A stretch of 64,000 bases of DNA from Macrostomum lignano (GCA_002269645.1 NIVC01000010.1:1984001-2048000), one strand, 5' to 3'; positions 6,776 to 49,006 are shown, numbered from the stretch's first letter. Program-made: numbers and translations. The notes: a model not told the origin generated them from the letters alone.

Positions 6776-9700
6776 CTGAAGGAAGTTAGGATTGTTCACA
6801 ATATAACATCAGTAGCAGATAGACACTGAACACAAGTCATTTTTTTCGCAACTTACAGAAAGTCTTGGAAAGAGTTGGTTGGAGTTGATGATCCGGACTG
6901 ATCTTCGGCAGGATACTCGAAATCGCCCATTTCCAATCCGATCATCCTCGGTGGCGGCTCATACAGCGACGAAGAATCGGCCTCTTCGCTCTCTTGGCCG
7001 TCATTCTGGTTGTTACCGGCTTCTACTTCGATTAGATTGCCATCGTAGAGTGTCTCGTACGACGAGTCTAGTCTCAGATTGATCGATTTTGATCTTCCCA
7101 AGCTGCTAGATGTGAAGCGCAGTTCAGGTTCCGCTTCCATGCTCAGCAATTCGGATCTCGGTCTTCGGACGACGATATTTGGCGGCGTAGAATTTGTAGG
7201 TGTAGTAGAAATCGATTTCTTCTTGAGGCGATTCGGCTTCTGTTCTTCTCGCTCGATGGCGTCCTTCTTGATGCGAGGTCTCTCAGCAAGCGCAGTGGGA
7301 TTCGCTCTGCCACGGGAAGTCGCAACTGGTGCTGCAACGTCAGTTTGATGTTGAACCGGGCGGACTTCGCTGAACTCGCTATCCGACTCGACGCTGGTTG
7401 ATTCAGCTAAGCTGTCTCCTTCATGCTCATTCAGTGCATTTTTACGCGCTTGTCGACGGGCTTCGTCTATCAGGGCGTGATGCATTTTAGCGTCTTCTGC
7501 TCTTCTGCGCTGAACATCTTCGCTATCATCGCTGTCTCCGCGTTTTGGGGGCTTGCTCGCGTTCTGGCTCGACGTTCGCCGACGCGTTTTCACAGGTGAG
7601 ACGGAGCGAATCGGCTGGTTCGGTTGTTTTTTAACGCTGGCATCCCGGGCAGGTTGCACAACCGGAAGAGGTGGTCGACGTGGAGATTCCACAGTTGGGT
7701 TCCGCCTTCTAGAAGTAGCAGTTGTCTTTTCCTGACCCTCCGAGTCAGAAGATCCTGGATGTTGCTCAGCTAGACCCTTCTCTTTTGAGGAACGCAGTGC
7801 AAGAATCAGCTGGCGCCGAGAGGGAGTTCCGTACACATCTTCGTTGTCTGAGCCGGAAGAAAATTCCTTAGGTTGCTTGCTTGAACCAGAAACCGCTCCG
7901 CCTTGTGCGCTTGCCCGAACTGGAGTCTGTGTCGGGGCGATAGATGAACTGCCACCTTGAACTGACTCATTTTGATTGTCAGCCACCGTGCTATCTCTCG
8001 GTACTTGTTTTTTGTGAGACCGTCGGACCGTTCGCCGGACGTTTGGCTCGGCCCCGTCATTTGACATTGCCGAAACCGAGGGCAAACTTTTGGATGATGC
8101 CAATCTGTTGCGCCAGTCTTTGATTGAAATTTTAACTGTGGATCGTTCAGAAGTCGAAGTGGTGCTAGTTGAATCGCTAGCAGAGTTGTTTCGCTGTCTG
8201 TCGAAATAAGCTTCGTGCAGACTGGATTGCTGCAGAACCATTGAGTCGATTGTTGTGTGAGATTGATTGCTGGCTCTTCTGCTACTGAGCAGGGCAATGG
8301 ATGGCAGGCTCTTAGCTATTTCACGTTTGCGCCTTTCAGAGACCACAATGGTTAACTCTTTCTCCTCCTCGGGATCCTGAGCCTTGGCTAGCATTCGTTC
8401 GGATATAACCTCTGATTCTGAGCTGCTGCGATGCCTCAGAGCCAAACTGTCACCAAGCAGTGTTTGATGATCGAAGGAGTCAAACTTCTGAGATGCACTC
8501 TTCGATACAAGGCTATTAAATTCTTGGAGCTGTCGGTCGACCTCTGAACTGAGGCTTGACTCGTCGGACTTTAGAAGTCTCAGATCGGGCACAGAACGCG
8601 CGCCCCTGACCCCACTTCTAGGACTTGTCTGATCACTCGACATTGTGGAATCCTCATTACTGTATTCATCAACCTCATTGCCATGTCCACTGCTCTTGGT
8701 TGCTTTTGTTTCCATGTTTTCAGCTGCCGTTATCGTTGAGTCACTTTCTTGATCAGAGTCATTGGCGAATGATTTTTTGTTTAACCGATCATTTGGCTGG
8801 GACTCGTCTGAAACGCTGCGATGCTTCTTCGGGTCTTCTGATCTTCGTTTCGTCGACACAATTTCAAGGTTTTCTGACGATTGTGATAAGGAATCTTTTG
8901 AGTCGTCACTTTGATATTCTTTTCCACGCTTATCAGTGAGATCTTTCAGAGGTGTTATCTTAGAACTGCTAGTAGACCTTGTTTTGCGATCAGTTTCCTG
9001 TTTTAACATCTCCGTTGCTTCTTGTTCCCACATATTTCCGTCGCGTCTCTGCTCTAATGACTCAGATGACTCCGAACTAGACCGCTCTTCTTGTCGATAA
9101 TCTTTCAATAGGCTTGCTGCTGCTCGAACTTCCTCTGGCGTTTCACCTCCTGTGATTGACGAACGATCTGGTGAGCTCTGTTGTGCCTCAAGACGTTTTG
9201 GTTTCGCATATTTGTTAATGGAAGTGTCCGACAGTTCATTGGCTGATGATTCGTTACGCTCGTCAAGTTTTTTAGTCTTCCCTCGAGTTTCTTCCTTCAA
9301 AGCTAATTCGGATGATTCAGTAGGTGAATTTGACATTTCACGCTGTCTGGGCTTCATCTCACTGCTCTCAGTGGCCTCCGACGTTTCAGACATGGATGAG
9401 GTTCTAAATTGTTTTTGAAACCTACTCGATCGTTCTTCCTTGATTTTTTCATTTGAATCTGATGAACTTGACCGAGAATTGACCTTTTGAAGGTTTTGGT
9501 TCAACCTTAGAACTTCCTCATCATCTGAAGACTCGGCGATTTGTCTGTCCTTTCCTGTTTTAGACGGTTTGAACACATGCTTTCTTGATTCTTTCAGTTG
9601 GCTTTCTACTTTTTCGACAGTTTCCTCTGATGCAGTTGAAGAATCAGAGTGAGATCTTTCCCGAGTGCTTTCATTCGGTCCCAAAGCGGCTCCTTGCTTT

Positions 9701-12700
9701 CTGAGTTTTACTTTAGGGTCCTCAATTGTTTTAGATGCTTTTCTGTCTTCATTTACTTGCTCGGAGGCTTCTGAGGAGCCGGATAGAGAGCGTGTTTCAC
9801 CTGTAGTTGAATTTTTATCAGTATATTTTCCGGCAGAACTGGGCTTTGTTGAAACGTTTCTCCGTGCCGTTTCCACCTCAGATGAATCTGATAATTCATT
9901 TGACTTGGTTGTGGCTTCCCGAATTGCCTTGCTTTGTTCTGAACTCACACTGTTGTCTTCTGCTGCTTCGGAAGTTTCAGAAATGGAAGATCTTCCTGAC
10001 TGTTGAGTGTCTTCGACTAGCTCAGATGAATCAGATTGAGACTTATTTTGCTTCCTTCTTGAACTTTTTCCAGCGACCTTTTGTGGTACTTTTTCCGGCG
10101 CAGTTTTTCTCCCATCGTCATCAGATGAGTTAACAGATTCATGTGGTGTTGCTTCGTAAATCACGTTTCTCTGTGCTGGCTTCACACCACTCTCGTCTTT
10201 AGCCTTATATTGTTCTGAAAGCGGCAATCGTTCCGACTGTTTAGCTTCATTTGCGTATTCTGAAGCTTCTGGTGAATCTGACACCAAGATTCTGGGAATT
10301 TCGCCTTCTTCTGATGCATTTGACGCTTTGTCCGAAGTCGTTTTCATCTTATCACTATCAGACGAATTAGATGAGCTAGACAGAGAACGTATGGGCTTCC
10401 AACTAGACTTTGTGTTACTGACTTCTCCAGATGCATCGGATCTTGCTAGTACTTTGCTAATCGTTTCTTTCACCTCATCATCAGATTTAGCCTTAGATGG
10501 CTCTGAAAGCGGCGATCGTTCTGTCAGTTTAGCTTCGTTCACTTGTTCTGTTGCTTCTGATGAATCTGACACCGAGTTGCTCGAGCTTTTTCGTAGCTTG
10601 TTGCCTCCAACCTCTTCTGATGTATTAGGTCTTACTGACGCTTTTTCCGGAGCCTTTTTCGTCTTGCCACTATCAGACGATGGTTCTTTTACAGTGGAAT
10701 CTTGACTCACTTTGCGTTTTGCTGGCTGGATACCATTTTCGGTTTCGGCAGATGCATTAGACAATGAAGAATTTGAATCTCTGGTGTCTTCGGCTTGATC
10801 GGATGCTTCTGTTGAGCCAGACAGCGAATGTTTGGGTTCCCTTCTAGACTTTGTGTTAGCGACTTTTCCAGATGCGTCGGATCTTATTACTGGAACTTTG
10901 TTAGGTGTCCTTTTCACCTTATAATCATCAGTTGAGTCCGATGATTCCAGAGTTTTTGAGTCTTGAGTCATCTCTTGCTGTCCTGGCTGTTTTTCAGGGT
11001 CCTTAGTTGCTTCGGATGAAGACATTGTCTCAATATCTTTGATTTGATTGGATTCTGTTGGTGAATCTAAAAGAGGATGCATCTGCTTTCCTCTTGTCTT
11101 CCGATCATGGACTTGATCCGATGTATCGGAATTTTCCAGATCTTTGTTCAGAGTCGTTTCTACCTCATCGCTATCAGATGAGTCAGGTGATTGTTTTGGT
11201 GTCGATTCCTGAATCATCTCGTCTGTTTCCGGTTTCATATATTCGTCTGTTGGCTCGGGTGCTTCAACTTGTTCTGGTGATTCTAGAGAACGTCTTTGCT
11301 TCGTTTCTGGTTTGTTATTGTTGACTTTTGCTAATGCACCAGGTCGTAAGGATTCTTTGGTTGGCACCACTTCAGCCTCATCTTCAGATGAATTTTTTCG
11401 AGTGACATTGCGTTGTGCGGGCTTCAGTTCACTGTTCGTTGTTTCATCGGGTGCCTGAGAAAATAGAGACCTTTCTGATTGTTCAGACTGATTTGTTTGT
11501 TCAGATGTTTCTGACGAATCTGATTGAGAATCCATGTATCTCTTCTTTGACTTCTCATTGCTGACCTCATCTGATGCATCAGAGCTTACTGAAAATTTTC
11601 TAGGCGTCTTCTCCATCTTATTGGCATCCGTGGATCCAGTTGATTCTTTTGGTGCAGATTCCTCTCGGTGTGATTGCTTCACGTCATTATCCTCTGCCGT
11701 TTTTCTGTCCTTTGAAATTTGAGATTTTGGCTGTGGTCTATTCCGTATTAATTTCTGGTCGGCAGCTTCCTCAGATGAACTTTCTGACCCAGAGTCATTG
11801 CTTTCTTGTATAGAGACTTCTTGTTTTGCAGCCTCATCAGCAACCTCTCCAGCAAGTCCCTTTGATCTTGTTAGTCCAGTGTCGCTATCACTTCCACCTG
11901 GTGACTCAAATTCTGAACTGCTATGATGCTTCTTTTTATGCACTGGCTCGCCGTCTTCCAATTTTTTAGTCGAACGGGAAATCGAAGCATTTTGCGTCTG
12001 TTTCTTCTCTTCATGTGTTGGGATTACGCTTTCAAAATTTTCAGATGAATCTGACGAATCTATTTCCTGCGTACTGGAAGCTTTCTTAGAATCCGCATCA
12101 GGGACAATACCGGATGCATTTGGTCTTCTTGGCATGGCTTTACTTGCATTGCTGTCCGATGACTTGACATCGTGAGGTTCTTGACGTTCTCTTGGCTTTA
12201 CATCCCAAGTTTCTTCAGACGAATCCGATAAGCCACTGTGCGAACGTGTCTCTCCAGTTTTGCGAACTTTCTTGAATTGTTTGCCTCTAGCTTTTTCTTC
12301 TTCAGAAGACGAAGTGGCCTCTTCTGATGACGGGCGCTTAGGAGTTCTCGTCCTTTTTTGCTTAGCGGCGCTATCATCTTGTTCCAATTTAGAAGCTTCT
12401 GTAGGCTCTTTATTGGATCTTTTAACCCCATCATTTAGATTTTCAACAGATGCTATTTCATCGAAATCCTCATCGATATCATTGTCAGTCGCTGTCCCAG
12501 CTAGTAGCTGTTCCACAAGCATGTCGGTATCAGTGTGGCTACTGTCAACTTCTGCCATCATCTCCCTTGTGGCTTTGGCGCATGAAGAATCGGTGTCGGA
12601 TTGCTCGCTGTAAAGATTTCGAGGCTCTTCCTGAGTAAGAAGATTTTTCTGCCCCTCTGAAACATTTGGAGCTTTCGCTGCGATCGCTGCCTCTTCAGAA

Positions 12701-15700
12701 GCAATAACTTCTTCAATTTCTTCAGAGTCTAAGCGCCCAAACTGCCTAGCTTCTTTTTCATCTGTGTTCCGATCTTTCTCGCTAGCGACATCTTGATTTT
12801 GTGAGAAAGTTTTATCTTTACTGAGAGAGGTGTTCTCCTCTGACCTCTTTGGTGTAGCTTTTGCACAAGTTTCTGTCATTTCGGGAGTAGGACTGTCCAT
12901 ACTTTTTGAAGATAAATGAGCATCCGTGTCGCTGTTACTGGCAGAATCGCTCAATGATTCCTGATTTTGCAATTGCTGAGCTAAAATAGACGCACCAACA
13001 TTTGTCGGAGAGTTCTCGATAACAGTCTTAACAGAGTCTATTGAGTCACGAGTTGCTTGCTCATCGACCAGTTGTTGGTTGAGATTAGTTACTCCCGTAA
13101 TTTCAACAGGTGATGTCTTGGGTTTCTGAGTTGTTGGTTCAGGTTTTGATTCACCAGTTAGAGCGTCTTTGGTACTTGACGAGCTACCAGTAGGACCGGG
13201 TTCAGTTTCAGCATCAGACTCTTCCGTTGATTTCTTGTTTGAAACTGTTCCAGTGTCCGTGTCGCTGTCACTGATTTCAACTTGTTCTTTGCGTGTCTCT
13301 ATCGCTGACTGCGGCAACATACCAGAGCTGGTCTGGTCATAATTATGAAATTCTCCATTGCTTAGACTCCATTGTCTTCTTGGCGAGCGTGCTGCTACAC
13401 CATGAGAGCCATCTGTGCTCTCGACCATGCTGTCTGGAACATCTGAAGGCGTAGCAAAGCCGCTATATTCGCTCTGTGAGTTATAGTCATCCTCGGGCTC
13501 AGTTCTCTCCGAAATATCATCAAGCAGGTGAGGCTGGCTTGAATGAATATAATCCTCATGATCATAATCATCGAAATCGAAATTTCGAAATGATATCTTT
13601 TCTGGCGGCAGACTTCGTACATCCGGGTTCTCTGAAATCTGTGACGAGTTAATAGTCAGTGCTGTGTCGTCATCCAATGGCTGAGGCCCTGGAAGATCAA
13701 CGGGCATGGACTTCACCTTCTGATCGATGGGTATCTTCTCAGTTGGTGAAATTTTCTGCTCTGAGCTTCCCTCTTCATCGCTAAAGGATCCTTTGTGTTC
13801 TGCTGGATGGTCTGAAAAAGCCGCCTTTTGCCTGGCTAGTTTTCTTTTTCGTTCCCTTTCTTGTTGACTTTCTTTTGGCAAAGTAGGTTTTTCTGATTCT
13901 GATTCTGAATTCTCGTCCTTATCAGAGACCGACAAAGAGCTCGAGGATGACTCGTCAATACTTTTCCGACAATGGTCTCCAGTTTCTTCATTTATTTTAT
14001 GGAATTTCTCACTGCCAGATTCACTTTTCGGAGGATCTTCTGCTACATGTAGCTCAGTATGATGCCGATTCTGTTTCTTAATCGATTCCCCGTCTTTGTT
14101 AGAGCTCGAATTACTTGACACAGTGCTGTCAGACTTTTGAGACTTTTTATCATCAAATATTTTTTGCTGCTTAACATCATCGGAATCTTCATACATAATT
14201 GCTTCCTGAGATTGTACCTCATCGTCTTGACATTCGAAGTCACTTGGCGTTAAATGCTTATCCCAAAGCTGACTTGACCGACTGCCTTCCTCTTGATCTT
14301 TGAAACCGGATGACGAGACGGGCTCAACTACAGGCTGACCGAAAGTAGTGCCTTCACCTCTATTCTTAAAGTCACAGGGTGTTGCAAGCTGACGGGGACG
14401 AGCGCCTACGTCGGAGTCACCTAATGAGACGGACTCATCTAGCATCCCACGCAAAAGAATGGCTTCAGCTTGATCTTTGGCGTAACTCGGTGAAACGGGC
14501 TCCTCCGCAGGTTTTCCGGCTCGACCTTCGGAGTCACTGAGACAATCAGAATTAATAGAAATGTCTCGGGTATGATTGTCTTTCTGTTCATCTCTGGTGC
14601 AACTCGATTCACCCTCAAGCTGACGAGGAAGCATTGCTTCAGCTTGATCTGTGGTGTCACTCGGCGAGACGGACTCATCCTCAAGCTGACGAGGAAGCAT
14701 GGCTTTAGATTGATCTGTGGTGTCACTTGGTGAGACGGACTCATCTGCAGGCTTGCTGTTACGACCTTCGAGATCACTGGGAGATTTAGAATCATCCGAA
14801 ATGTCCCGGCGATGAGCATCTTTTCGTTCTTCTCTGGTGGCACTCGAATCACCCTTAAGCTCATGAGAAAGCATTGCTTCAGCTTGATCTGTGGTGTCAC
14901 TCGGCGAGACGGACTCATCCTCAAGCTGATGAGGAAGCATGGCCTTAGCTTGGTCTTTGGCGTCACTCGGTGAAACGTACTCATCTGCAGGCTTGCTGAT
15001 ACGACCTTCGGGATCACTGGGAGATTTAGAATCATCCGAAATATCCCGGCGATGGGCATCTTTTCGTTCTTCTCTGGTGGCACTCGAATCACCCTTAAGC
15101 TCATGAGAAAGCATTGCTTCAGCTTGATCTGTGGTGTCACTCGGCGAGACGGACTCATCCTCAAGCTGATGAGGAAGCATGGCTTCAGCTTGATCTGTGG
15201 TGTCACTTGGTGAGACGGACTCATCTGCAGGCTTGCTGTTACGACCTTGGAGATCACTGGGAGATTTAGAATCATCCGAAATGTCCCGGCGATGAGCATC
15301 TTTTCGTTCTTCTCTGGTGGCACTCGAATCACCCTTAAGCTCATGAGAAAGCATTGCTTCAGCTTGATCTGTGGTGTCACTCGGCGAGACGGACTCATCC
15401 TCAAGCTGATGAGGAAGCATGGCTTCAGCTTGATCTGTGGTGTCACTTGGTGAGACGGACTCATCTGAAGGCTTGTTGATACGACCTTGAGAATCAGAAA
15501 CATCCGAACTTTGTCGAGGACGAGCATCTTTCTGCTCATATCTGGTGGCACTCGATTCAACCTCAAGCTGGCGAGGAAGCATTGCTTCAGCTTGATCTGT
15601 GGTGTCACTCGGCGAGAGGGACTCATCCTCAAGCTGACGAGGAAGCATTGCTTCAGCTTGATCTGTGGTGTCACTCGGCGAGACGGACTCATCCTCAAGC

Positions 15701-18700
15701 TGACGAGGAAGCATTGCTTCAGCTTGATCTGTGATGTCACTCGGCGAGAAGGACTTATCCTCAAGCTGACGAGGAAGCATGGCTTTAGCTTGGTCTTTGG
15801 CGTCACTTGGTGAGACGGACTCATCTGCCGGCTTGCTGGCACGACCTTCGGAGTCACTGGGAGATTCAGAATCATCCGAACTTTGTCGAGGACGAGGATG
15901 TTTCTGTTCATATCTGGTGGCACTCGATTCACGCCTAAGCTGGCGAGGAAGCATTGCTTCAGCTTGATCTGTGGTGTCACTCGGTGAGACGGACTCATCT
16001 GCCGGCTTTCTGGCACGACGTTTAGAGTCACTGGGAGATTCAGAATCATCTGAACTTTGTCGAGGATGAGCATATTTTCGTTCATCTCTGGTGCCACTGG
16101 ATTCACTATCAAGCTGACGAGGAAGCATTGCTTCAGCTTGATCTGTGGTGTCACTCGGCGAGACGGACTTATCCTCAAGCTGATGAGGAAGCATGGCCTC
16201 AGCTTGATCTGTCGTGTCACTCGACGAGGCGGACTCATCCTCAAGCTGACGAGGAAGCATTGCTTCAGCTTGATCTGTGCTGGCCCTCGGTGAGATTGTC
16301 AAATCTGCAGGCTTGCTGTTACGACCTTCGGGATCACTGGCAGATTCAGAATCATCCGAACTTTGTCGAGGACGAACATCTATCTGTTCATATCTGGTGG
16401 TACTCGATTCACCCTCAAGCTGACGAGGAAGCATTGCTTCAGCTTGATTTGTGGTGTCACTCGGCGAGACGGACTTATCCTCAAGCTGATGAGGAAGCAT
16501 GGCCTCAGCTTGATCTGTGGTGTCACTCAACGAGACGGACTCATCCTCAAGCTGACGAGGAAGCATTGCTTCAGCTTGATCTGTGCTGGCACTCGGTGAG
16601 ATTGTCAAATCTGCAGGCTTGCTGTAACGACCTTCGGGATCACTGGGAGATTTAGAATCATCCGAAATATCCCGGCGATGAGCATCTTTTCGTTCTTCTC
16701 TGGTGGCACTCGAATCACCCTCAAGCTGACGAGGAAGCATGGCTTCAGCTTGATCTGTGGTGTCACTCAACGAGACGGACTCATCCTCAAGCTGACGAGG
16801 AAGCATTGCTTCAGCTTGATCTGTGCTGGCACTCGGTGAGATTGTCAAATCTGCAGGCTTGCTGTAACGACCTTCAGGATCACTGGGAGATTCAGAATCA
16901 TCCGAACTTTGTCGAGGACGAGCATCTATCTGTTCATATCTGGTGGCACTCGATTCACCCTCAAGCTGACGAGGAAGCATGGCTTCAGCTTGATCTGTGG
17001 TGTCACTCGGCGAGACGGACTCATCCTCAAGCTGACGAGGAAGCATGGCTTCAGCTTGATCTGTGGTGTCACTTGGTGAGACGGACTCATCTGCAGGCTT
17101 GCTGTTACGACCTTCGGGATCACTGGGAGATTTAGAATCATCCGAAATATCCCGGCGATGAGCATCTTTTCGTTCTTCTCTGGTGGCACTCGAATCACCC
17201 TTAAGCTCATGAGAAAGCATTGCTTCAGCTTGATCTGTGGTGTCACTCGGCAAGACGGACTCATCCTCAAGCTGACGAGGAAGCATGGCCTTAGCTTGGT
17301 CTTTGGCGTCACTCGATGAGACGGACTCATATGCCGACTTGCTGGCACGACCTTCGGAGTCACTGGGAGATTCAGAATCATTCGAACTTTGTCGATGACG
17401 AGCATCTTTCTGTTCATCTCGGGTGGCACTCGATTCATATTCAAGCTGACGAGGAAGCATGGCCTTAGCTTGGTCTGTGGTGTCACTCGGCGAGACGGAC
17501 TCATCCTCAAGCTGACGAGGAAGCATGGCTTTAGATTGATCTGTGGTGTCACTTGGTGAGACGGACTCATCTGCAGGCTTGCTGATACGACCTTCCGGAT
17601 CCCTGGGAGATTTAGAATCATCCGAACTTTGTCGTAGACGAGCATCTTTCTGTTCATATCTGGTGGCACTCGATTCACGCCTAAGCTGGCGAGGAAGCAT
17701 GGCTTTAGATTGATCTGTGGTGTCACTTGGTGAGACGGACTCATCTGCAGGCTTGCTGATACGACCTTCCGGATCCCTGGGAGATTTAGAATCATCCGAA
17801 CCTTGTCGAGGACGAGCATCTTTCTGTTCATATCTGGTGGCACTCGATTCACGCCCAAACTGGCGAGGAAGAATTGTTTCAGCTTGATCTGTGGTGTCAC
17901 TCGGCGAGACGGACTCATCCTCAAGCTGACGAGGAAGCATTGCTTCAGCTTGATCTGTGCTGGCACTCGGTGAGATTGTCAAATCTGCAGGCTTGCTGTA
18001 ACGACCTTCGGGATCATTGGGAGATTCAGAATCATCCGAACTTTGTCGAGGACGAGCATCTATCTGTTCATATCTGGTGGCACTCGATTCACCCTCAAGC
18101 TGACGAGGAAGCATGGCTTCAGCTTGATCTGTGGTGTCACTCGGCGAGACGGACTCATCCTCAAGCTGACGAGGAAGCATGGCTTCAGCTTGATCTGTGG
18201 TGTCACTCGGCGAGACGGACTCATCCTGAAGCTGATGAGGAATCATGGCTTCAGCTTGATCTGTGGTGTTACTCGGCGAGACGGACTCATCCTCAAGCTG
18301 ACGAGGAAGCATGGCCTTAGCTTGGTCTTTGGCGTCACTCGATGAGACGGACTCATATGCCGACTTGCTGGCACGACCTTCGGAGTCACTGGGAGATTCA
18401 GAGTCATCCGAACTTTGTCGAGGACGAGCATCTTTCTGTTCATATCTGGTGGCACTCGATTCACGCCCAAACTGGCGAGGAAGCATTGTTTCAGCTTGAT
18501 CTGTGGTGTCACTCGTCGAGACGGACTCATCCTCAAGCTGACGAGGAAGCATTGCTTCAGCTTGATCTGTGCTGGCACTCGGTGAGATTGTCATGTCTGC
18601 AGGCTTGCTGTAACGACCTTCAGGATCACTGGGAGATTCAGAATCATCCGAACTTTGTCGAGGACGAGCATCTATCTGTTCATATCTGGTGGCACTCGAT

Positions 18701-27700: not shown

Positions 27701-30700
27701 ATTGCATCGTCAGCCGCAGGACTGCTTTCTAGTGCACTTGGCAGCTTTACCTCTCCAGATTTAGGAACTAAACCTTCTGAAACGGATTCATCCGTACCAA
27801 TTTCCGAAACATCTCGAGATGTATTCTCATGGCCTTGCGTTTCGGACTGCTTTCGTGGTGCCGCCCGCGAGTCGGTTTGTTTCCTTCCCGGCTTGTTTCG
27901 TGAAGCTCGACCATCTTTGTTGTCACGTTCTGCTTCTGTTGTCGACTTTTGACTGATATCATCGCTTGAGGAATCATAGGCAATATTCTGGTCCTCACTT
28001 TGCTTCTTGACCAGATTCAAATTTTCTGCTGAATCTATTGAACCTTGGCCTGTTTGTTCAGGCCTTTCTACATCGTGTTTCTTTTTCGAAGTATTTCGAT
28101 CCGATTTCAGCTTTCTTTTGATTTTTCGAGCTGACGAATTAGATGATTCTTCATGAGCTTCAGATTCATTAGAGTCAGTGTCCTTGTCTGATGTCTCTGT
28201 GGCATCTTTGCTTTTCTCGCCTTGTAGACTGGCTAGTTCACCTTTCACTGAGCTGACGCGTACCGCATCGCTTCGACTTGTACTATAGTGTTTTTCTTTC
28301 TTCGCAGTCGTTCGGTCTTTCAAACTAGAACCCTCTTGGTCTAGAATAGATTTTTTTTCTGGAGTAAGCCTTAAGAGATCTTCAGCTTTTGAAGAGCTGA
28401 AGCGCTGCTTGTCTGATTGTAGACTTTCAGAGCCTTCTCCGTTATCCGTCAAGTGACTGCCGTGTTCCCTATCGCTGTGCTTACTTTCTGTTTCTGGATT
28501 CTCAGATAGTCGAATTTCGGACTCGCTGCTCTGCTTGTGACGGCTTGAAGGGTGCGTTTCGGACCTAAGTCCTATTTGATCATTGTCTGACGCATGGCTG
28601 CCAGCGCTTAGTTTTTTAGAATTACCGGTATCTGAGGGTTTGTCTGGAGAAGAATCTAGCTGACGACTTTTCACTACAAGACTTCGGTGACCTTCCAACG
28701 GCTTACTTCCTGGATCGTCTTTTGTTAGACCCCGTTGACGACTATCGGAGGCACCACTCCTAGACTTTTCATCCAAAGATTCGTACGAATAATGGTCTGA
28801 GGGTGGCTTCCCTGATCTATCTAATTTAATTCTTAGTTGACTATCATCAGATTTTGGACTTTTTGGCCTGTCATTTGCCGAAATAACTTCATTGCTGTCT
28901 GAGGCATCGCTTCCAGGCACCCTTTTCGAAGAATCAAAATCCGATGAGTAACTGCCTAAATTTTGGTTTCTAGACTTGCTTACTGTCGGGCCAAGTTTAT
29001 AAGCGTCTGCGGCATCGCTTTCAGACTCCTCAGTCGCAGAATTTTGTGAATCTCGTAACTTCAAAGGTCGCTTTCGGCGTTCGTCAATTGCCTGTTCTTG
29101 TTGATAACTGCTAGAATCACGCAAATCAGGACCGTCATTTGTAGAATCATTCGAATGTTTGTCTAATGGCAGCATTCCTGGCTGGCTGTCAGATAGATCC
29201 TCACTTGGAGTAAGTCTCCGATGGTCTGATACATCGACTTTTTCAGGCTCCTTGTTTGTGACATCACTTGGTTGACTATCTAAAGACCTCCTTCTTGACT
29301 TCAATGCTACTAAGTCACTATTTCGATCATCGGATGCAGCGCTATTTGCGTTCTTATCTTTAAAATCCTTCGGAGTCTTTGAAGAAGAAATTTCCGTGTG
29401 TTCTTCAGCTGGTTTAAATTTTCGATTGTCAAGGTCAGGGCTTCCCGACTTTGTTGGATCTGATTGAGGTCCGTCTGAAGACAACATTCCAGATTTATCT
29501 TTTTTTGGATCTGGTTTACAGTCACCAGAGACACGGGATCCAAGCATATCTTTTGCTGAAGTAGCTTTAGGACCGTGGGAGATATCACTTTCAGACATCT
29601 CAGAAGAATCACTTGAATGACTGTCAAGGTTTTGACTTTTCGGTTTGGCTTCGGTTGACTCAAGATGATAATTTTCTGAAGCATCGCTGCCATATTTCTC
29701 ATCGTTAGAATCACATGGACTTTGAGAAGGAATGGTTCTTGACAAAGATGTACTTTCAGTTGGATTAAACTGATGATCAAGAATTTCTGATACATCAGGC
29801 TGATGGCTCTGTGAAGGCAAAAGCCTTGGCCCTCTTGCGGCTGAACCTAGTTGATGGTTGTCAGAGATTTGTCTGTTATGCAATACTTTTGTTGGTCTTG
29901 GCTTAGAGCTATCTGGTGCATCCATTTGAGCATCTGTGTCCGTAGAATCACGCGAATCACTTTCCGAGGGCCTGCTTTCATTTTGGTCAAGAATCTGTGA
30001 TTGGCTTTTTGACTGTAGCTCTCTAGCCTTGCTGTCTACTCGATCGCGTGAATGACTTTCGGAAGATCGCTTTTTAGAACTCTCGTCTTCTCGACTGTTC
30101 AGATCACTGTCAGATGACTGAAGCTTCGGATTTTTGTTAGTTTGTTCGGCTAGGGGCACTCCAGACAGGCTATCAGTTGCATCAAGCTTACTTCTTTCTG
30201 AAGGCAGCATTCCCGATCTGCTCTCAGTTGCGTCACATAATTTACGATTGTCTATAGGCACCCATTCCGCTCCGTCATCAGTTACATCCGGTTTACCACC
30301 GTCTGAAGGCAGCATTCTTGAGATTCTTTCGGTAGCTTCAGGCTGATAATTTTCTACAAGAGGCATCAGCGATGTTCTGTCGGTTGCATCAGGCTGGTTG
30401 CCTTCTGAATACGACATTCCTAAGCTACTCTCGGTTGCATAATTAGGCTGACGACCGTCTGAAGGCAGCATTCTTGATGCCCTTTCGGTAGTTTCAGACT
30501 GGCGATTGTCTGAAGGAAGCATTACTGAACCTTTCTCAGATTCATCAGGCTGTCTGCCATCTGAAGATGGCATTCCTAAGCTGCTCTCGGTTGCCTGAGT
30601 TTGATTAACGTCTAAAGGCAGCAGTCCTGAGCCGCTTTCTATTACGTTGATATCTCGTTGAGAATTTTCTGAAGGCACTACTTTAAAAATGCTTTCAGTA

Positions 30701-33700
30701 ATTTCAGGAACTACCAACTGGCTTGCAGTTGCATCAGGTCGAATACCTAAAGGAAACTTTCCAGAGTTGTCCTCAGTTGTATCAGGATTACGACCATCTA
30801 AAGCGGTTTTTCCCGACATGCTCTCAGTTGCATCCGGTTGATGACCGTCTAAAGGAGGCACTTCTGAAGTGCTGTCAATTTTGATAGGCTGACCAACACC
30901 TGAACACGGCATTTCTGACTTGCTCTCTACTGCACGATGCTTATTACCGTCGGAGCGCGGCATTTCTGAGTTGAATTTGCTAGCTTCCGGCAGACGACCG
31001 GCTGAAGAAGACATTTGCGACCTGCTCTCAGTTGCATCCTGCCGATTGTCGCCTGTAGACAGCGTTTCCAAGGTTCTCTCTGCCGTATCAGGCTGGCCTG
31101 AACACAGCGTTCTTGAGCCAGTTTCGGTTGCATCAAGTTGACGACCGTCTGAAGGCAGAATTCTTGAGTCGCCCTCTGTTAGGTCAGATTGATGACTATC
31201 TGAAAGCTCTTTTTTAGACCTGTCCTTGGCCGTTTCAGGCTGAAGATCATCTGAAGGTGGTTTTTTTGAAATGCTGTTTCTTTCATCAGGCTGATAACCT
31301 GCGAAAGGTAGCATTCTTGATGTGCTCTCAGTTTTATAAGGTTTGCGAAATTCAGAGGTGTTCTCTGTTGTATCTGGTTGACGACCATGTACAGGAGACA
31401 CTTCTGAGGTGCTATCAACTGTAGCAGACTGATGACCATCTGAAAGAGGGGTTCCTGACATGCTCTCTGCTGCATCTCTCTGGCAACCGTCTGAAAGCAG
31501 CATCTTTGAGCTGTTTTCATTAGATTCAGGCTGAGGACCGTCAGTTAAAGGCATCACCGACCTAGTCTCAATTAAATTAGGTGAATGGCCGTCTGAAGAA
31601 AATTTTCCATAGCTTTCCTCAGCTGCATCATGTTCACGGCCACCCGAAGGACTTGTTCTCGACTTAATACCAGTTGCAGTAGGATGATCTTTATCGTCAG
31701 AAATTGCATGGTTGGAAGGCGCACTCTCAGAGGCAGCAAGTTCACTACCGCCTAAATAAAGCATTTCTGAGTTTTCCCTTGTTGTAGCAGGATGATGACC
31801 GTCTAAAGGAGGTATACCTAATGTGCTCTCAGCTGCATCAGACTGCTGAACGTATGAAGGAGGCACTTCTGAGGTGCCGTCAATTGCGTCAAATTGATGA
31901 CCATCCAAATGAGCTCTTCTCGACATGCTGTTCGTTCCGTCAGGCTTGTAACCGTCTGAAAGCAAAATTCCAGAACTGCATTCAGATACATCAGTATGAG
32001 AACGGTCTAGAGGAGGCGTTTGCAATCTTTTCTGAGCTGCGTTAGCCTGACGGCTCTCTGGAGGCGGAATTGTTGATATTCTCGGATCAGTTTGAGAAAT
32101 GTCTGAAGGCAATATTACTGGATTGTCCTCAGTAGTTTCAGGCTGAAGATTATCCGAAGGAAGCCTTTCTGACATGCTCTCTATTGCATCAAATTGACGA
32201 TCATGTGAAGGAAGCATTTCTAAATTTGTTTTGTGTTGATCCACTAGATGGCTGTAGGAGGATGGGCTCATTTGAGACTTTTCGTCTGCTAAACCCGCTG
32301 CAAACCTGTCGGACGGCTCCATGTCTGACTTTCCGTCTGTGGAATTCGCTGAATATTTGTTGAAATTATCGGACGCATCATTTTTTGCACCTACTAAACG
32401 ACTGTCAAGCGGTTTTAAATCTGAGCCTACGTCTGTTCGATCTACTGGATGTCTGACAGATGGTTTTATGTCTGCCTGTTCGTCTGTTAAATCCGCTGGA
32501 TGGCTTTTTGATGGTCCCATTCCAAAGCCGTTGTCTGGGGGATTCCCTGAATGGCTCTCAGACGGACTCAGATCTGACCTTTCGCCTGTTGAATCCGCTG
32601 GATGGGTGTCAGACGGTCGCGTATCTGATCTTATGTATGAAGGATGCGCTACATGGCTGTCGAATGGTCTCATATCCGACGTTTCGTCCACTGAATCCTT
32701 TGAATGTCGGTCTGACTGTTGCATTCCAGACCTCCCGTCAGTTTGATTCGCTAATTGATTATCGGACGGTGTGATCCCATACTTTTCGTCCATCTGATCC
32801 ACTGGATGCGTTAAAGAGGGTCTCAGTTCAGACTTTTCTTCGGTTAAATCTGCTGAACGTCTGTCGAATTGTTTCATTTCAGATTTCTTGTCCGTTGCAT
32901 CCTCTGGACGATTGTCAGAGAGTCTCAATCCAAATCTTTCAGCGGTTGAATCGATTGGATGGCTGTCAAACTGTTTCATATCTGACCTTTCGACTGATGA
33001 GTCGTGTGAGTTGCGGTCTGGCTGTTGCACTCTTGACTCTATTGGAACCGTTGGCTGTCTGTCGGAAAGTCCCATGTCTGAGTTTTCGTCAGTTGAATCC
33101 ACTGGGTCGGTGTCGGTCAGTCCGATTCGAGACCTTTCGTTTCTTTGATATACTGATTGGCTGTCAGATGGTCTCATATCTGACTTCTCGATAGTTAACT
33201 CCATTGGATGAGTGTCTGTGAGCCCCATTTTAGACCTCTCGTAAGTTGGATCAGTCAGAAGGCTGCCGGATGGTTCCAATCGAGCCCTTTCGTCGATTGA
33301 ACCTACTGGATAGGTGTCAGACTGTCGTACATCTGACCTTTTGTTTGTTGGATCTACTGGATGGCGGTCAGATTTTTTGTCAGCTTGATTAGCTAGATTT
33401 CCGTCGGAGGGTCCCTCTTGAGACTCCTCGCCTGCTGAATCTGCTGGATGTCTGTCGGACGGTCTTATGTCGGCTAAATTTTCGTCCGTTAAATCCCCTG
33501 GGTGATTGTCTGACTTTTGAATTCCAGACGGTTTCTCTGTTTGCTTCGCTAAATGACCGATCGAGGGTCTCGGTCCGGACCTTTCGTCCGTCGATTCTTC
33601 TGGATCTCTGTCGGACAATCTCATATCTGACTTTTTGTCAGTTAAATCTGTTAGACGTTTGTCGGACGGTCCCATATCTGATTTCCCTTCTGTTGAATCC

Positions 33701-36700
33701 GCTATGTCCCGGTCGGGAGGCCTAATTTCAGACCTATTATCTGTTGGAACCACTGGATGATGGGTCTTAATGGATCTTGCATTTGAAATTCCGCCAGTTG
33801 AGTCCTCTTCTTGGCTGTCAGATGGTTTCATTCCAGCGTTCTCGTATTTTGAATGGACTGAATGGCTGTCTGACAGTCCTTTTCCAGACTTTTCGTCTAA
33901 AGGATCCACTGGAAAGTTTTCGGACGATCTCATTGCAGACCTTTCGCCAATTTGATCTACTGAATTGCCGTCTGGTTTTGTGTACGATGGACTGTTTGGA
34001 TGCGGGTCTTTTAACGTGCCTTTCGTTAAATGAGGTTGCTGATTGTCATAAGAGTTGTCACCAGGCTCGTTTTCCGATGTTTGAGACTGGCGTCTGTCAG
34101 ATTGTTGGGTTCCAAAATTATCACGAGGCTCATCTGGCTGCGATGTCTCAGAATTCCCTTCCGAAGAACTCGATAGACTTTCGGACTTGTCCACAGAGGG
34201 ATAACGTCTATTCTCATTTGCTTCTCTAGGGTTGTTTTCTGCCGATCGACTTTGCGGATCTTGCTTGTTTGGTCCGCCAGAGTCGAACTCGGAAGGGCCA
34301 GCTCCTTGCTTCAATGAAGCTGATTTATCGCATTCGTTCTCATCTAGCTGCCCACGAATAGGAGGGTGGCTTTTTGGCTCACCACTATCAGCCTGTTGTT
34401 GATGTTCTTCAAAAAACCTTTCTCCAGACGGATCTTCCTTAGAGTTGGTGGCGCAATGATCAAAGGGCTGTTCATGTTTCCCAGAATCGGCTGGACGCTC
34501 AACAGACAGCCTGGGTAAATCAGGTTGACTACTATTGAACAGTTGGCTTCTAGGTTCCTCGGCAGGATCCTTAGCTTCGACGATATCGACGGCAAAAGAA
34601 TGGGAAATCGACTTGTCAGAGACGATTTTTCTTAACTTTTTGGGTGAGTCCGAGTCGATATGACCTTCACTGCTGTTTGGACTTGACATCGTATCTTTGG
34701 ATTGACTTTCATCAGTAAACTGATTTGCCATAGAGCTGCCGCTTACACCTGGTAATTTTTTTGGATCTTTGTCATCGTTATCACTCTGAACGGGCAATTC
34801 TCTCATGGTGTATTTGCGAGAATCCGGTTGAGTCTGGGCCGGTTCTAAACTTTGAATACTATGTTGAGAATCAAAATCAACCGAACCATGGCTCGGGGCT
34901 TGAGTTGCTTCGATTGCATCTGCCTTTGCTTCGGCATGTGGCGCTTTTGAAAATTTACCATCATAGCCTGACTTTATTTTTGCTTTTTCCGAATCCAAGT
35001 CACTGTGGACTTCATCAGAACTAGATTTACTAGCTTTAGCAGAAGCTTTCTGTCTATTGTCCCTTTTTGTTGATCGCTTTGCAGATGGCTTCTTCACAGA
35101 GGCCTCGTCGCTTTTGTCGGAGCCACTGGATTTTGCTTGACTTGATTGCTCAAACGATGCTTCTTTTCTTTCTTTACCATATTTTACATCTTTGGATCCA
35201 CTGTCATCATCAGTACTTCCAGAATGCCAATCTTGACTTCCATCGGATGTCGACTGGCGAGTTGACTTAGACTTTTTGTTCTTTTTTCTTCTTCCGCTTT
35301 TTTTCCGTGGCTTTTTACTACTCTCAGTTTTAATCGACTCGGAAGTTGACTGTTTCTCTGACCCACTTAAGCTATCGAGACGAATCTGATCAGTAACTCC
35401 TGAAATTTGAAGAGGGCTTTCTGGCTTTCGAAGCCGTTGACTACGAGGTTTTTGTTCTTCACCAACATGTTCTTTAGATCTTACGTCTTTATCAAGCGCC
35501 GTACCTGTCCGAGAATCGATGCCATCTGTTGGTTCTAACCTGTATTTACCTTCGTAGGTCTCTGGAGCAGCACTCATTAAAGAGGATTCTTTTTTCGTCA
35601 TTACAGACTCTAGATCTTTACCAAAGTTGTCTGCAAAATCTGGATAGGTTCCGTCAGCAGTATTTGACAAGGACATGGGAATCCTCATTCTCATAGGGAG
35701 CTGATGCTGTTCTTCAGGTCCGTCCCTATCCTGATGTGGCTCTTCACCTGACTGCAGACTAGTTGCATTTGGCAGGCCGTCGAAACTGTCTCGGTCAGGC
35801 TTTGGAGCAGAGCTGGGTTGAGCGACAGTTCGATTGTCAATTAAATCGGATTTCTCCTGATTAACTCGAGAACCCAGGTTCTCTTTAGTTGGCTTGATTT
35901 TCTCTTGAGCGTCGTCTTCAGTAACCGACGCAGCTGATTTTTCAAGTTTTGACTTATCGAGTGACGTCCAAGACGCTGTGGAATCAGTCGAAAGTTCATC
36001 GTTTAGTGAATTGCTGACAATAGGCCTTGTTAAGGTGTGCTCAGAGTGAGTATCACTACGAGCAGGCGCATCAAAAATTGGATGACTGGATTGTTCATCG
36101 GAAAGTTGGCCATCTCGCTTCTTGTCGAGCATACTGCTTTTAGCTGAAGGTTTGGAGCGTCTCATTTTCTTGCTGGGCTTCTTTTGGTTTGTGCCTTCAA
36201 CAGTTTTCCCGTCGACAGCGTCATAGTACACGTCAGAGTCTTTTGAATACTCTGTAGATTCCGCTGCATCGTTTGATGATGAGTCGTCCATTGAGAAACT
36301 CATTGGCATATGTGACTGATTTCGCTGCTGCTGTGGCTGCTGTTCAGCAGGTGCTCCCATCGGCATACCCTGCGGCTGCTGCTGGGGCTGCTGTTCAACA
36401 GGTGCTCCCATCGGCATACCCTGCGGCTGTTGTTGGGGCTGCTGTTCAACGGGCGCTCCCATCGGCATACCCTGCGGCTGTTGTTGGGGCTGCTGTTCAA
36501 CAGGCGCTCCCATCGGCATACCCTGCGGTTGTTGTTGGGGCTGCTGTTCAACAGGCGCTCCCATCGGCATACCCTGCGGCTGTTGTTGGGGCTGCTGTTC
36601 AACAGGCGCTCCCATCGGCATACCCTGCGGCTGTTGTTGGGGCTGCTGTTCAACAGGCGCTCCCATCGGAATACCCTGCGGCTGTTGTTGGGGCTGCTGT

Positions 36701-39700
36701 TCAACAGGCGCTCCCATCGGCATACCCTGCGGCTGTTGCTGTGGCTGCCATTGATCAGCTGTTCTTATTGGGATTTCGTGCAATCCATCGTCTGAAAAGC
36801 TGGCTGTAGTGTCACCCAACCTTTGTCGAGAATGTACATCCGTGCGTTCACCTATGGCTGCTCGTCGAGTGAGTCTGCGTACCTTCTCCATCAGAGGCTG
36901 CAGTTCGTGTTGTAAATTAGCAGCCTCCGGTAGGTCAGCCAATCGGTCCAGATCGGCCTCCAGGTCGAGTAGGCCATCTCGGACGTGGGCCTGATTAGCC
37001 GAGCGCTCGTCGCGTTCAGCCAAAAGACTTCCAACCTGGCCACTCAGCGAGCGAATCGTGGCGTCCTTCTGACGACTAAAATGAGAGAAAATCGTTTCTT
37101 AAAAACCAAATTGCTAAAGCAATACTTGCACTTCGTACTGAATTTCTAAAAACTGCGCTGCCTAAACTATAAAGCCCTGATAAAGAACTGTATTTTAAGT
37201 AGCTGCAGTTTCAGCTCTGCTTAAACCCTCAACTCAATCATCTAATTATTTAACACGTCAAAACCCTTCAACAATGATAAAATTGACGTAAATCAAGACT
37301 TTGACCCGCAGGACACTTCGCCAGGACCGGGCGCGAACTAGACGACTCACTTACACATACATTAGGGACTACATTCATACTAAAAAACCAATAACGTAAG
37401 CTTGTAAATGTTAAAACTTTAATCAGCTATCTCCCGGCTACCCCCTAAGATGAGGGAGCAACATAGCCGCTGGCGACACCGCGGGGGACCTCCCTGGCCG
37501 GCATTAACACTCAGTCCAAAACGAAGCATCTAACGCTTTAAGGGATAGCTGAAAAATGCAAGCGACTTCCCACTGTACCCATCGCTAAACTCCCTCCAGC
37601 CCAAAAAATCAGGAGAAAAGAGCTAACCCATCAGCAATTAGCTGTTGCATTGAATCTCCAAGTTCGCTACCACCAGCTGAAGAGAGCGCGGCGCCTCGCT
37701 GGCCAGAATCGGGCGTCAACGACCGAGAACGGAAAGCCGCAACACCTTGCCGACGCGCGGCACTTTCTGGCAAATGACGCTGTCTGGCTCCCGGGGCAGA
37801 CGCTTTTCGGTCCTCGTCCATCTCGTCCAGAAGCTCCTGTTGACGTTTAAGAATCGCTTGCGACTCGTCCAGTTGCTGTTTAACGTAGTCAAAACTGCGA
37901 ACTGTTGAGGGCGCCATCGGGATCAGGCGTTTCACTGAAAAGAGATTGTAGGAGTCCTTGGTAAATTTCGTCAAGGTTTAAGGATTTGTGAATTGGTCCG
38001 ATTGGGATGTAGTAACGATCAGTTTTCGTCGGGCAAAATTATATGAGGCAACAAACAAACCTAAATCTGTATTTGATGAGTGAGTTGTTTCGATATGCTC
38101 CAGTTGATTCTCGTTGTCTGTCATCGCTTTTTGATCTTTCTCGACGCTATGTCTGAAATCGATTTAGGAAAGGTAGAATTTTAATTTTTTTAAGAAATCA
38201 AAGATGAGTTCAGTTTTTCGGAAATTTTTTGTGGAAAGTTATTTCCTAAAAGTAAAAAGTCTTTTTAGCAACCAAATACGAGCTATGTAATGCAGATATT
38301 GAGTCGACAACAAAAGTTTGTTTGAACAGAATATTTCATTTAAAGCAGTTGACTTACTCATCACTTGGAGATGCGGTTTGCTCCGTTTGTGAACTTATTG
38401 TATGATCATCCTGCACCCTCTGCAACGAAAACAGTACAGAAAAGTGGAGGCTCAATTGCAGCGTAGAGCCACAGCAATTGCAAACTGCTTCTACTCGTAT
38501 TTGCTCATGCCGATTGATTTCTTCCATTGAAGTAAGTTGCAATTGTGTAACTTTCTTTAGTTACAGAACTCAGGTCTGACTCACCTCTACTGACTGCAGA
38601 GCCTTGTTTAGTTGAGCATTCGCCTTAAATAGATTGTGAAAAGTGTGAAATATGCGCAGTTTCGTATGGAGCTAGCAATATCGACGCAAAGTCACGCATT
38701 CGAGAGCAATTTGAGATGCTGCAACACACAGTTATACAGTTACTGTAATTTCTGAGCGAAACGAGACAGAACACAACTTTAAAAAAATTTTCGTCTGACT
38801 GTCTATCGTATACATTTGGGTGCCTTGCATACACAGACCAGACACACCCAGAATGTATTTGATGGTGGACCAGACCAAACACACCCAGAATGTATGGTGG
38901 ACTAGACCAGACACACCCAGAATGTCTTTGATGGTGGACTAGACCAGACACACCCAGAATGTCTTTGATGGTGGACCAGACCAAACACACCTAGAATGTC
39001 TATGATGGTGGACCAGACCAGACACACCCAGAATGTATGGTGGACTAGACCAGACACACCCAGAATGTATTTGATGGTGGACCAGACCAGACACACCCAG
39101 AATGTATTTGATGGTGGACCAGACCAAACACACCCAGAATGTATGGTGGACTAGACCAGACACACCCAGAATGTCTTTGATGGTGGACTAGACCAGACAC
39201 ACCCAGAATGTCTTTGATGGTGGACCAGACCAAACACACCTAGAATGTCTATGATGGTGGACCAGACCAGACACACCCAGAATGTATGGTGGACTAGACC
39301 AGACACACCCAGAATGTATGGTGGACTAGACCAGACACACCCAGAATGTCTTTGATGGTGGACTAGACCAGACACACCCAGAATGTCTTTGATGGTGGAC
39401 TAGACCAGACACACCCAGAATGTCTTTGATGGTGGACTAGACCAGACACACCCAGAATGTATTTGATGGTGGACCAGACCAAACACACCCAGAATGTCTA
39501 TGATGGTGGACTAGACCAGACACACCCAGAATGTCTTTGATGGTGGACTAGACCAGACACACGGCCAGAATGTCTTTGATGGTGGACTAGACCAGACACA
39601 CCCAGAATGTCTTTGATGGTGGACCAGACCAAACACACCTAGAATGTCTTTGATGGTGGACCAGACCAAACACACCTAGAATGTCTATGATGGTGGACCA

Positions 39701-48920: not shown

Positions 48921-49006
48921 AAGTACTTCAGAGTAGGAGACACAACTGAATTTGTTTTAATAATTCAGAAAAACGTTTTTTTTTAAAAATATTTTTAGTA
49001 CAATGT

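Follow-up and report, generated by a model that had tools for sequence, protein, structure and literature searches.

Several animal scaffold proteins, namely AHNAK, giant ankyrin-B and ankyrin-G, Drosophila Ank2-XL and Futsch/MAP1B, join a small module to thousands of repeat-built, disordered residues encoded in one giant exon, and tails of this type are thought to serve as tethers, spacers or linkers to microtubules or membranes. Piccolo, Bassoon and the C. elegans protein CLA-1L are huge and mostly disordered, with coiled-coil stretches and an N-terminal Q/P-rich short repeat, and CLA-1L has a multi-kb tandem-repeat exon. The giant exon of ankyrin-B has been described (PMC7401806), and expansion of tandem repeats is the general origin of long internal exons, which encode disorder (PMC12457776). 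Here, we analyze a minus-strand gene with a 30.2-kb coding exon in a 64,000-nucleotide (nt) stretch of NIVC01000010.1 from the Macrostomum lignano assembly GCA_002269645.1 (Mlig_3_7); this whole stretch is referred to as the window, and all coordinates are those of the window. The gene shares the features of the general class of giant-exon, repeat-built disordered proteins (PMC12457776). It is an orphan addition to this class, unusual in its size (1.15 MDa and a 30.2-kb coding exon) and in the contrast between a head under constraint and a tail that drifts. To our knowledge, the exon would rank with the longest uninterrupted coding exons on record for any animal.

The nearest working analogy is provided by the giant-exon scaffolds (AHNAK, ankyrins, Futsch/MAP1B and CLA-1L/Piccolo), with a predicted coiled coil as the module. 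However, the M. lignano protein is strongly acidic, is without ANK, ZU5, death, PDZ or MAP1 regions, and has a tail ~ 2-3 times longer than those of AHNAK, the giant ankyrins and Futsch/MAP1B. Giant ankyrins carry ANK, ZU5-UPA and death domains, whereas the upstream exons of the M. lignano gene encode only helices and linkers and show no ANK, ZU5 or Death match. MAP1B and Futsch have N- and C-terminal MAP1 homology regions, while phmmer searches with the termini of the M. lignano protein gave M. lignano copies only. AHNAK combines a PDZ domain with repeats of ~ 128 amino acids (aa), in contrast to the absence of PDZ and the periods of 17, 22 and 58 aa found here; the titin PEVK region reaches a P+E+V+K content of ~ 70% in ~ 28-aa units between Ig/Fn3 domains, in contrast to 26% and no Ig or Fn3. 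The likeness to Piccolo and Bassoon lies in size, disorder, coiled-coil stretches and a Q/P-rich repeat near the N-terminus, but their zinc fingers, PDZ and C2 domains have no Pfam counterpart in the window product or in the UniProt fragment A0A1I8GX79, and cysteine amounts to 0.2%. Mucins possess a signal peptide, Pro/Thr/Ser repeats and vWD/CTCK or SEA/transmembrane modules; here, S+T+P is 30%, D+E is 19.7% and none of those modules is present. The M. lignano adhesives Mlig-ap1 and Mlig-ap2 (5,407 and 14,794 aa) have large repetitive regions and no homologue in NCBI nr, and are secreted, Cys-rich proteins with KR regions of isoelectric point (pI) > 14 and C-type lectin, vWD, TIL, C8, TSP1, EGF and LDL domains (PMC6410801). 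The giant-exon protein comes from the same species and is likewise giant, repetitive and orphan, but it has 0.20% Cys, a pI of 4.77 and 13.3% K+R, with no adhesive domains and no signal peptide. Thus, Pfam and phmmer agree with a preliminary description of this locus, which had reported none of the diagnostic domains of ankyrins, MAP1B/Futsch, AHNAK, titin or flatworm adhesives; the filament or spacer role it proposed may be a reasonable analogy.

The open frame on the minus strand runs from 37098 to 6856 (10,081 codons without a stop). The giant exon within it comprises 10,073 codons, or 95.7% of the coding sequence (CDS), and is bounded by an acceptor with a pyrimidine-rich tract (...ctcattttAG) and a GTAAGT donor at 6856-6851. 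The complete model was built by splice-phase chaining of open segments, with GT..AG at all borders, and gave a gene at 43596-6649 (minus strand) with 10 exons, a CDS of 31,566 nt with a single terminal stop and a predicted product of 10,521 aa (1,155 kDa, pI 4.77). The exon borders, both splice sites and the coding end are those of the preliminary description, and its estimate of ~ 10,070 codons and ~ 1.1 MDa is close to the rebuilt values. The splice ends are all identical in a paralogous copy, L002 (NIVC01001372.1). The introns on either side of the giant exon are short (552 and 81 nt), which fits the requirement of very long exons for short flanking introns in splicing (PMC12457776). The junction between exons 8 and 9 (...QQLIADG/RQKDATIRS) occurs in A0A1I8HJK3, PAA68769.1 and PAA94490.1, and the last splice junction is also used by a transcript-based GenBank model on a further copy, L003 (NIVC01003573.1, at the contig end). 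The end of exon 10 matches exactly the end of A0A1I8GXB1, that is, the spliced C-terminus, and an AATAAA at 6650-6645 overlaps the stop codon. Exon 2 was taken in its long form (end 41082), as in PAA94490.1 and PAA68769.1, and an internal ATG in exon 3 (MSKPRHD...) is a possible alternative start.

A frame of this length raises the question of whether it could result from chance or from the repeats themselves. In the non-repetitive parts of the exon (3,621 and 2,522 codons), there are no in-frame stops, while each of the five other frames contains 68-383; the probability of such stop-free runs, calculated from base composition, is ~ 1e-92 and ~ 1e-62, respectively. A chance or repeat-driven open reading frame (ORF) was ruled out, since just one frame stays open across 18 kb of unique sequence, which is independent of repeat assembly. 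The codon positions are of the coding type, with a G-rich first position, an A-rich second position and a GC content at third positions (GC3) of 0.36-0.40. We consider it highly probable that the gene is genuine and codes for a giant disordered protein.

No real Pfam domain was found in a scan that covered 7,081 aa of the giant exon and all upstream exons. A match to Rep-A_N in the array (whole-sequence E = 2e-7) was rejected as a summed repeat artefact, no individual stretch passing the threshold, and matches to Cgr1 and Gon7 were below threshold. An exhaustive phmmer search with the N-terminal 448 aa and the C-terminal 642 aa against 1.84 billion representative proteins returned four proteins, namely PAA50746.1 (1,976 aa), PAA68769.1 (3,783 aa), A0A1I8HJK3 (408 aa) and A0A1I8GXB1 (191 aa), all from M. 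lignano; no homologue outside this species was present in that set and neither terminus matched a characterised family. A word-indexed search with the C-terminal 601 aa gave zero matches, although the exhaustive search did find the M. lignano copies, because the prefilter was swamped by low-complexity candidates. Among PDB sequences, phmmer found nothing specific, and Foldseek comparison of the head model with PDB structures gave generic helical hairpins only (E > 1).

In GenBank, the gene of the window is represented by BOX15_Mlig001306g1 (PAA94490.1), a "hypothetical protein" of 4,503 aa that belongs to the cluster of PAA68769.1. Its GenBank locus, L001 (NIVC01000010.1 1,988,439-2,037,596), is base-for-base identical to window positions 53596..4439. 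All public models, ranging from 191 to 4,503 aa, are shorter than the rebuilt gene. PAA94490.1 and PAA68769.1 agree with exons 1-8 and with the junction into the giant exon, the spliced N-terminal query matches the 408-aa UniProt fragment with 98% identity, and transcript-based models reach into the exon from either side, covering ~ 4,470 aa from its 5' end and 1,976 aa from its 3' end. Since RNA-seq (StringTie/TACO) and a mapped de novo transcriptome underlie the Mlig_3_7 annotation (PMC5730564), this agreement provides indirect RNA evidence for both giant-exon ends and for all nine introns. PAA94490.1 drops four of eight Q/P units and jumps ~ 10 kb inside the big array; the jump has no GT..AG, carries the word CCAGAGATGA on both sides and involves a 1-base slip. 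The internal "introns" of the public model are repeat-collapse artefacts, and the collapse of the arrays during transcript assembly explains why the model ends at 4,503 aa.

Four UniProt fragments from the ML2 assembly also belong to this gene (A0A1I8GX79, A0A1I8GXB1, A0A1I8HJK3 and A0A1I8GEQ8), and three unrelated names are attached to them: "Protein piccolo", "MAST3" and "t-SNARE coiled-coil homology domain-containing protein". These labels trace to fragmentary or frame-shifted ML2 models and have no domain or homology support. The piccolo label, on A0A1I8GX79, sits on a frame-shifted ab initio model. The t-SNARE label is attached to A0A1I8HJK3 and A0A1I8GEQ8; t-SNAREs have a SNARE motif followed by a C-terminal membrane anchor, or are built like syntaxin or SNAP-25, whereas the exons concerned show no SNARE/syntaxin Pfam match, no transmembrane segment and no PDB sequence match. 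The gene is real, transcribed and restricted to the M. lignano lineage, with a truncated public model. The preliminary description had supposed the protein to be undescribed; it is indeed uncharacterised, but its sequence is public in truncated form and split in pieces, both in GenBank (PAA94490.1, PAA68769.1 and PAA50746.1) and as the misnamed UniProt fragments. The case illustrates an annotation failure in which short-read assemblies collapse coding tandem arrays, so that five truncated, differently named pieces of one gene are on record.

The two extra copies in the assembly make it possible to ask which parts of the gene selection preserves. Their open frames comprise at least 6,824 codons in L002 (to the end of the DNA compared) and 1,977 codons in L003; the synonymous divergence (pS) is ~ 0.012 between the window and L002 and ~ 0.07 between L003 and both. 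Between the window and L002, introns differ by 3.9% substitutions and 29 insertions/deletions (indels) in 3.6 kb, of which 24 have lengths not divisible by 3. Over its unique N part (3,609 codons), the giant exon differs by 1.4% and five indels, all in-frame, with a ratio of nonsynonymous to synonymous substitution (dN/dS) of 1.08, and the head (small exons and the first 108 codons of exon 9) has a pS of 0.032, one in-frame indel and a dN/dS of 0.34. For the C part (1,944 codons), compared between the window and L003, the values are a pS of 0.054, four indels, all in-frame, and a dN/dS of 0.60. No nonsense change was found in the giant-exon N part, compared with 5.5 expected from 153 random substitutions (P = 0.0035), and the difference in dN/dS between head and tail is significant (Fisher p = 0.006). 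The in-frame indels, the lack of nonsense changes and the head dN/dS argue that selection maintains the open frame and constrains the head; in these comparisons, the head is the only part under clear purifying selection, while residue identity and repeat number drift in the tail (dN/dS 0.6-1.1). The young array (Table 1) is ~ 2,058 aa long in L002, a 1.8-fold difference from the window, only eight unit sequences are common to both, and at the border of the array, 97 aa are deleted in-frame from L002.

The synonymous divergence of the giant exon between the window and L002 (0.013) is lower than that of the introns (0.039) and the small exons (pS 0.032), and it is patchy along the exon, ranging per 600 codons from 0 (codons 270-869) to 0.038 (codons 3270-3869); this pattern hints at gene conversion between the copies. 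In L003, a 1-nt deletion at 5865-5870 (GCGGAAG to GCGAAG) causes a frameshift 60 nt upstream of the last donor, and PAA50746.1 therefore ends in a frame-shifted tail. We regard the deletion as an assembly error because A0A1I8GXB1, the same variant from an independent assembly, has an intact ending without it.

The composition of the open frame is dominated by S (17.1%), D (10.3%), E (9.4%), A (7.1%), P (7.0%), R (6.9%), K (6.4%) and Q (6.3%), while C (0.20%), W (0.11%), F (1.0%) and Y (1.3%) are rare, which bears out the S/D/E/K/R/Q-rich, aromatic- and Cys-poor product described before. The absence of a globular domain, signal peptide and transmembrane segment was likewise borne out: besides the empty Pfam scan, the top 19-aa Kyte-Doolittle mean in the full model is 0.89, the N-terminus (MLRSAESYSGGPPQRGRP...) has no hydrophobic core and no signal-like stretch is present at either candidate start. 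An intracellular location may follow, the absence of a signal peptide being its sole basis. The mean normalised hydropathy is 0.35, compared with a charge-hydropathy boundary of 0.44, and only 2% of 61-aa windows, mostly in the head, lie on the folded side. Thus, the tail of ~ 10,000 aa is acidic, Ser-rich and predicted to be intrinsically disordered. The preliminary description had also emphasised the density of phospho-acceptor motifs; these are numerous (375 S-x-x-[DE] and 173 [ST]-P) but no more so than composition predicts (338 ± 13 and 161 ± 11 in shuffles).

That description overlooked an N-terminal head of ~ 500 aa, for which AlphaFold2 (AF2) predicts helices in a coiled-coil-like organisation. 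The AF2 model was a single-sequence run on an early 448-aa N-terminal model that contained the short version of exon 2; from exon 3 onward, its numbering is therefore ~ 68 residues lower than that of the final protein. Helices were predicted at 50-82, 106-194, 207-240, 250-282, 326-385 and 388-413, with low-confidence linkers; the helix 106-194 (89 residues) is continuous over exons 3, 4, 5 and 6, with a predicted local distance difference test score (pLDDT) of up to ~ 90. In contrast, the C-terminal 642 aa gave a mean pLDDT of 44.7 and a few isolated helices. The non-repetitive C-terminal part of the giant exon as a whole is S/E/D/K-rich, with acidic Ser clusters of the SDSSE type alternating with basic K/R stretches.

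Between the head and this C-terminal part, the tail contains three generations of tandem repeats (Table 1). In the 17-aa array of the unit QQPQQQPQGMPMGAPVE, L002 carries two extra units. The old degenerate zone changes in consensus from S-D-M-R-P-S-D-x-H-P-x-D-S-T-D-E-K/R to, later, S-x-M-L-P-S-D-G-R-Q-P-D-A-T-E-S, and it shows autocorrelation peaks at lags 17, 34 and 51, the register being kept over hundreds of residues. Its units were counted by autocorrelation and fixed-register rows; an iterative hidden Markov model recovered just 23-36 units because the 17-aa unit is too short. In the young array, complete units are always exactly 22 or 58 aa (66 and 174 bp), and higher-order periods of 240, 306 and 1,332 bp are present. 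Three motifs exceed the counts in shuffles there, namely M[LI]P (89 vs 0.5), PSD (85 vs 6) and D[SAT]T[DE] (57 vs 2), and they are likewise enriched in the old zone. This sharing suggests that the old and young arrays derive from a single ancestral unit, and the tail would have grown through successive tandem amplification of a 17-22-aa unit with M-L-P, P-S-D and D-[S/A/T]-T-[D/E] motifs. Between repeat units, the ratio of nonsynonymous to synonymous divergence (pN/pS) is 0.64-0.75. The peptide QLEDESVSPSDTTDQAEAMLPR, quoted in the preliminary description, occurs exactly five times and has many near-variants.

Table 1 Features of the giant-exon gene and its surroundings in the window
Feature	Position	Strand	Length	Remarks
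Exon 1	43439..43596	-	158 nt	ATG start MLRSAESYSGGPPQRG...; donor GTACGA; start shared with PAA94490.1 and PAA68769.1
Exon 2	41082..41379	-	298 nt	first predicted helix, then Ser/Tyr/Gly-rich linker
Exon 3	40658..40776	-	119 nt	start of long helix (predicted)
Exon 4	40235..40379	-	145 nt	coiled-coil helix (predicted)
Exon 5	38585..38623	-	39 nt	ANAQLNKALQSVE; also in PAA94490.1 and PAA68769.1
Exon 6	38358..38419	-	62 nt	
Exon 7	38061..38152	-	92 nt	unusual donor GTTTGT, kept in paralog
Exon 8	37628..37934	-	307 nt	helix and linker (predicted); donor GTTAGC, kept in paralog
Exon 9, giant exon	6857..37075	-	30,219 nt	
17-aa (51-bp) array	36324..36748	-		near-perfect; unit QQPQQQPQGMPMGAPVE, 8.3 copies
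Old degenerate 17-aa zone	30049..33951	-		open-frame aa ~ 1050-2350; ~ 75 periods
Young array	14449..25458	-	~ 3,670 aa	aa 3881-7550; 52 x 22-aa and 42 x 58-aa units
C-terminal part of giant exon	6857..14448	-	~ 2,530 aa	non-repetitive
Last intron	6776..6856	-	81 nt	GTAAGT ... CTAAC ... TTCAG
Exon 10	6649..6775	-	127 nt	...L PPEQLVAIQQEGAADLPPDLTTSEQVFGRSVHDPDEEADAL; stop TAA at 6651-6649
Minisatellite in intron between exons 4 and 5	38650-39950			
Low-GC interval	44000-46000			between giant gene and ATG4-like segment
ATG4-like open segment	46088-46921	+		Peptidase_C54, E = 7e-20
Minisatellite	49040-50930			L001 2733-4508
ABCD-type half-transporter exons	53246-56824	+		ABC_membrane_2 and ABC_tran
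Class C G protein-coupled receptor ORF	59174-61609	+	811 aa	intronless; ANF_receptor and 7tm_3
Transposase-like open segments	63296-63999	-		LEDDLPRSGKPATIATTQMTDKIID...

Two properties of the locus were observed in addition. The array of 22- and 58-aa units is also open in a second frame, for 346-601 codons (14439-16244 and 16926-17966, minus strand), and this is the frame misread by the truncated public models (the tail of PAA94490.1 and much of A0A1I8GX79). The intron between exons 4 and 5, which contains a minisatellite, is 1,611 nt long compared with 741 nt in L002, and the part that still aligns shows 20% divergence, much more than the other introns.

What could such a protein do? In the mechanism we propose, the coiled-coil head would pair (dimerise) or dock the molecule onto some cellular structure, and the tail would act by its bulk properties, namely length, negative charge, phosphorylatable serines and more than 100 reiterated short motifs. 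The tail would thus be a long flexible tether or brush, or a multivalent scaffold, with no folded active site. This anchored tether or scaffold, taken by itself, is a tentative proposal to which we give clearly less than an even chance, whereas the broader combination of a real giant disordered gene with a tether/scaffold mechanism is slightly favored. A more specific version, in which the protein would be a macrostomid-specific megadalton structural element, a coiled-coil-anchored, hyper-acidic polyelectrolyte chain with more than 100 M-L-P/P-S-D/D-T-T-D motifs that would build or space a worm-specific structure or nucleate a condensate, is speculative and rather unlikely.

Several points weigh against the proposed tether or scaffold. 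The tail dN/dS of ~ 1, the 1.8-fold array difference and the 97-aa deletion show that tail detail is largely dispensable, and part of the size could therefore be nearly neutral repeat bloat and not a tuned spacer. Gene conversion between the copies may inflate the apparent conservation, and the putative coiled-coil state of the head is drawn from one single-sequence AF2 model. The full-length mRNA of ~ 32 kb and the polypeptide of 1.15 MDa are predictions, short-read transcripts collapsing in the arrays; the gene identifiers were not found in the full texts or supplements of M. lignano papers, and no expression or proteome record of the gene turned up.

If the full frame is translated, the product would be among the largest proteins in any animal and almost wholly disordered, and it would offer a natural test of which properties of a giant disordered chain are under selection; in this gene, selection appears to hold the open frame, the composition and the short motif, not the residues or the repeat number. 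RNA interference, in situ hybridisation and transgenesis are possible in M. lignano, so the function of an orphan megadalton protein is directly testable.

Of the explanations that compete with a tether or scaffold of this kind, the one that survives best, although we still consider it improbable, places the protein in the nucleus or nucleolus as an acidic phosphoprotein condensate scaffold similar to Nopp140/treacle, Ki-67, SRRM2 or SON. In this picture, which we rate no higher, acidic Ser clusters alternating with basic patches would carry heavy phosphorylation and provide the framework of a nuclear body or a coat on chromatin. Ki-67, SON and SRRM2 have repeat-built disordered regions in one very large exon, and Nopp140 and treacle alternate acidic Ser/Asp/Glu stretches of the CK2 type with Lys/Arg without forming a fold. 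This alternation is loosely echoed in the C-terminal 2,500 aa, where S/D/E clusters alternate with K/R stretches, S[DE]x[DE] occurs 27 times compared with 16 ± 3.6 expected, and strong basic clusters are present, such as KKPRKKSGRRKKNKKSK and RKIKRKLKSDRNTSKKKH. However, K[KR]x[KR] motifs resembling nuclear localisation signals are not enriched over composition (13 vs 11.3 expected), Pfam detected no LisH, SRP40_C, FHA, Ki-67 repeat, cwf21 or RS domain, and no homologue of those families appeared in the exhaustive search. LisH and SRP40_C belong to Nopp140 and treacle, which are ~ 7-15 times smaller than the M. lignano protein, and the latter adds a predicted N-terminal coiled coil and motif-bearing arrays. 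At 1.15 MDa, it is far above any nuclear scaffold of the Nopp140/Ki-67/SON type known to us.

It could also be argued that no single protein is made from the giant frame, either because it is internally spliced into short isoforms, because it is a decaying or redundant duplicate, or because the array length is an assembly artefact. The shortness of every public model, the unequal array lengths of the copies, the tail dN/dS and the presence of three copies in a redundant assembly all fit such a view. Nevertheless, we find it very unlikely: in the public model, the internal "introns" have no GT..AG, fall on identical repeat words and include the 1-nt slip; the transcript-based models cover both exon ends; three independently assembled copies are open, with in-frame indels only and no nonsense changes; and the unique 18 kb of the exon does not rest on repeat assembly.

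Least probable of all, by a little, is a secreted structural or gel protein (an adhesive, mucus, rhabdite or eggshell matrix like Mlig-ap1/ap2 or mucins), for although M. lignano makes giant repeat-rich secreted proteins, as noted above, and the Ser-rich tandem repeats in the giant Pro/Thr/Ser exons of mucins are similar, coiled-coil heads are typical of cytoplasmic proteins, neither candidate start has a hydrophobic N-terminal signal, the Cys content and pI (4.8) depart from the Cys-rich adhesives and their basic KR regions, no vWD, C8, TIL, lectin, EGF, TSP1 or SEA domain is present, and S+T+P reaches just 30%.

The surroundings of the gene contain several other features (Table 1). The open segments at the end of the window resemble a degraded transposase and have no Pfam match at E <= 0.01. 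In the minisatellite of 49040-50930, the GC skew is -0.4 to -0.5, and several frames are open on both strands, with ORFs of 300-600 aa (GEGDMGDSRV.../WERETWEIVE...); the 532-aa protein without a Pfam domain that GenBank calls there looks like a spurious call on a tandem repeat. The segment matching the ATG4 autophagy protease is divergent to the giant gene and lies ~ 2.5 kb from its start. The corresponding position in L002 has a called Peptidase_C54 gene of 501 aa, while none is called in L001. The ABCD-type gene, with Walker A GPSGCGKT and signature LSPGEQQR, also flanks the L002 paralog, which indicates conserved synteny; (CLSV)n/(TDRQ)n microsatellite fills its 5' region (52.0-53.4 kb). 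The class C receptor ORF has a signal-like N-terminal segment and a GC3 of 0.63, compared with 0.39 in the giant gene. Finally, the interval between the giant gene and the ATG4-like gene has a GC content of 29%, compared with 43-52% elsewhere.

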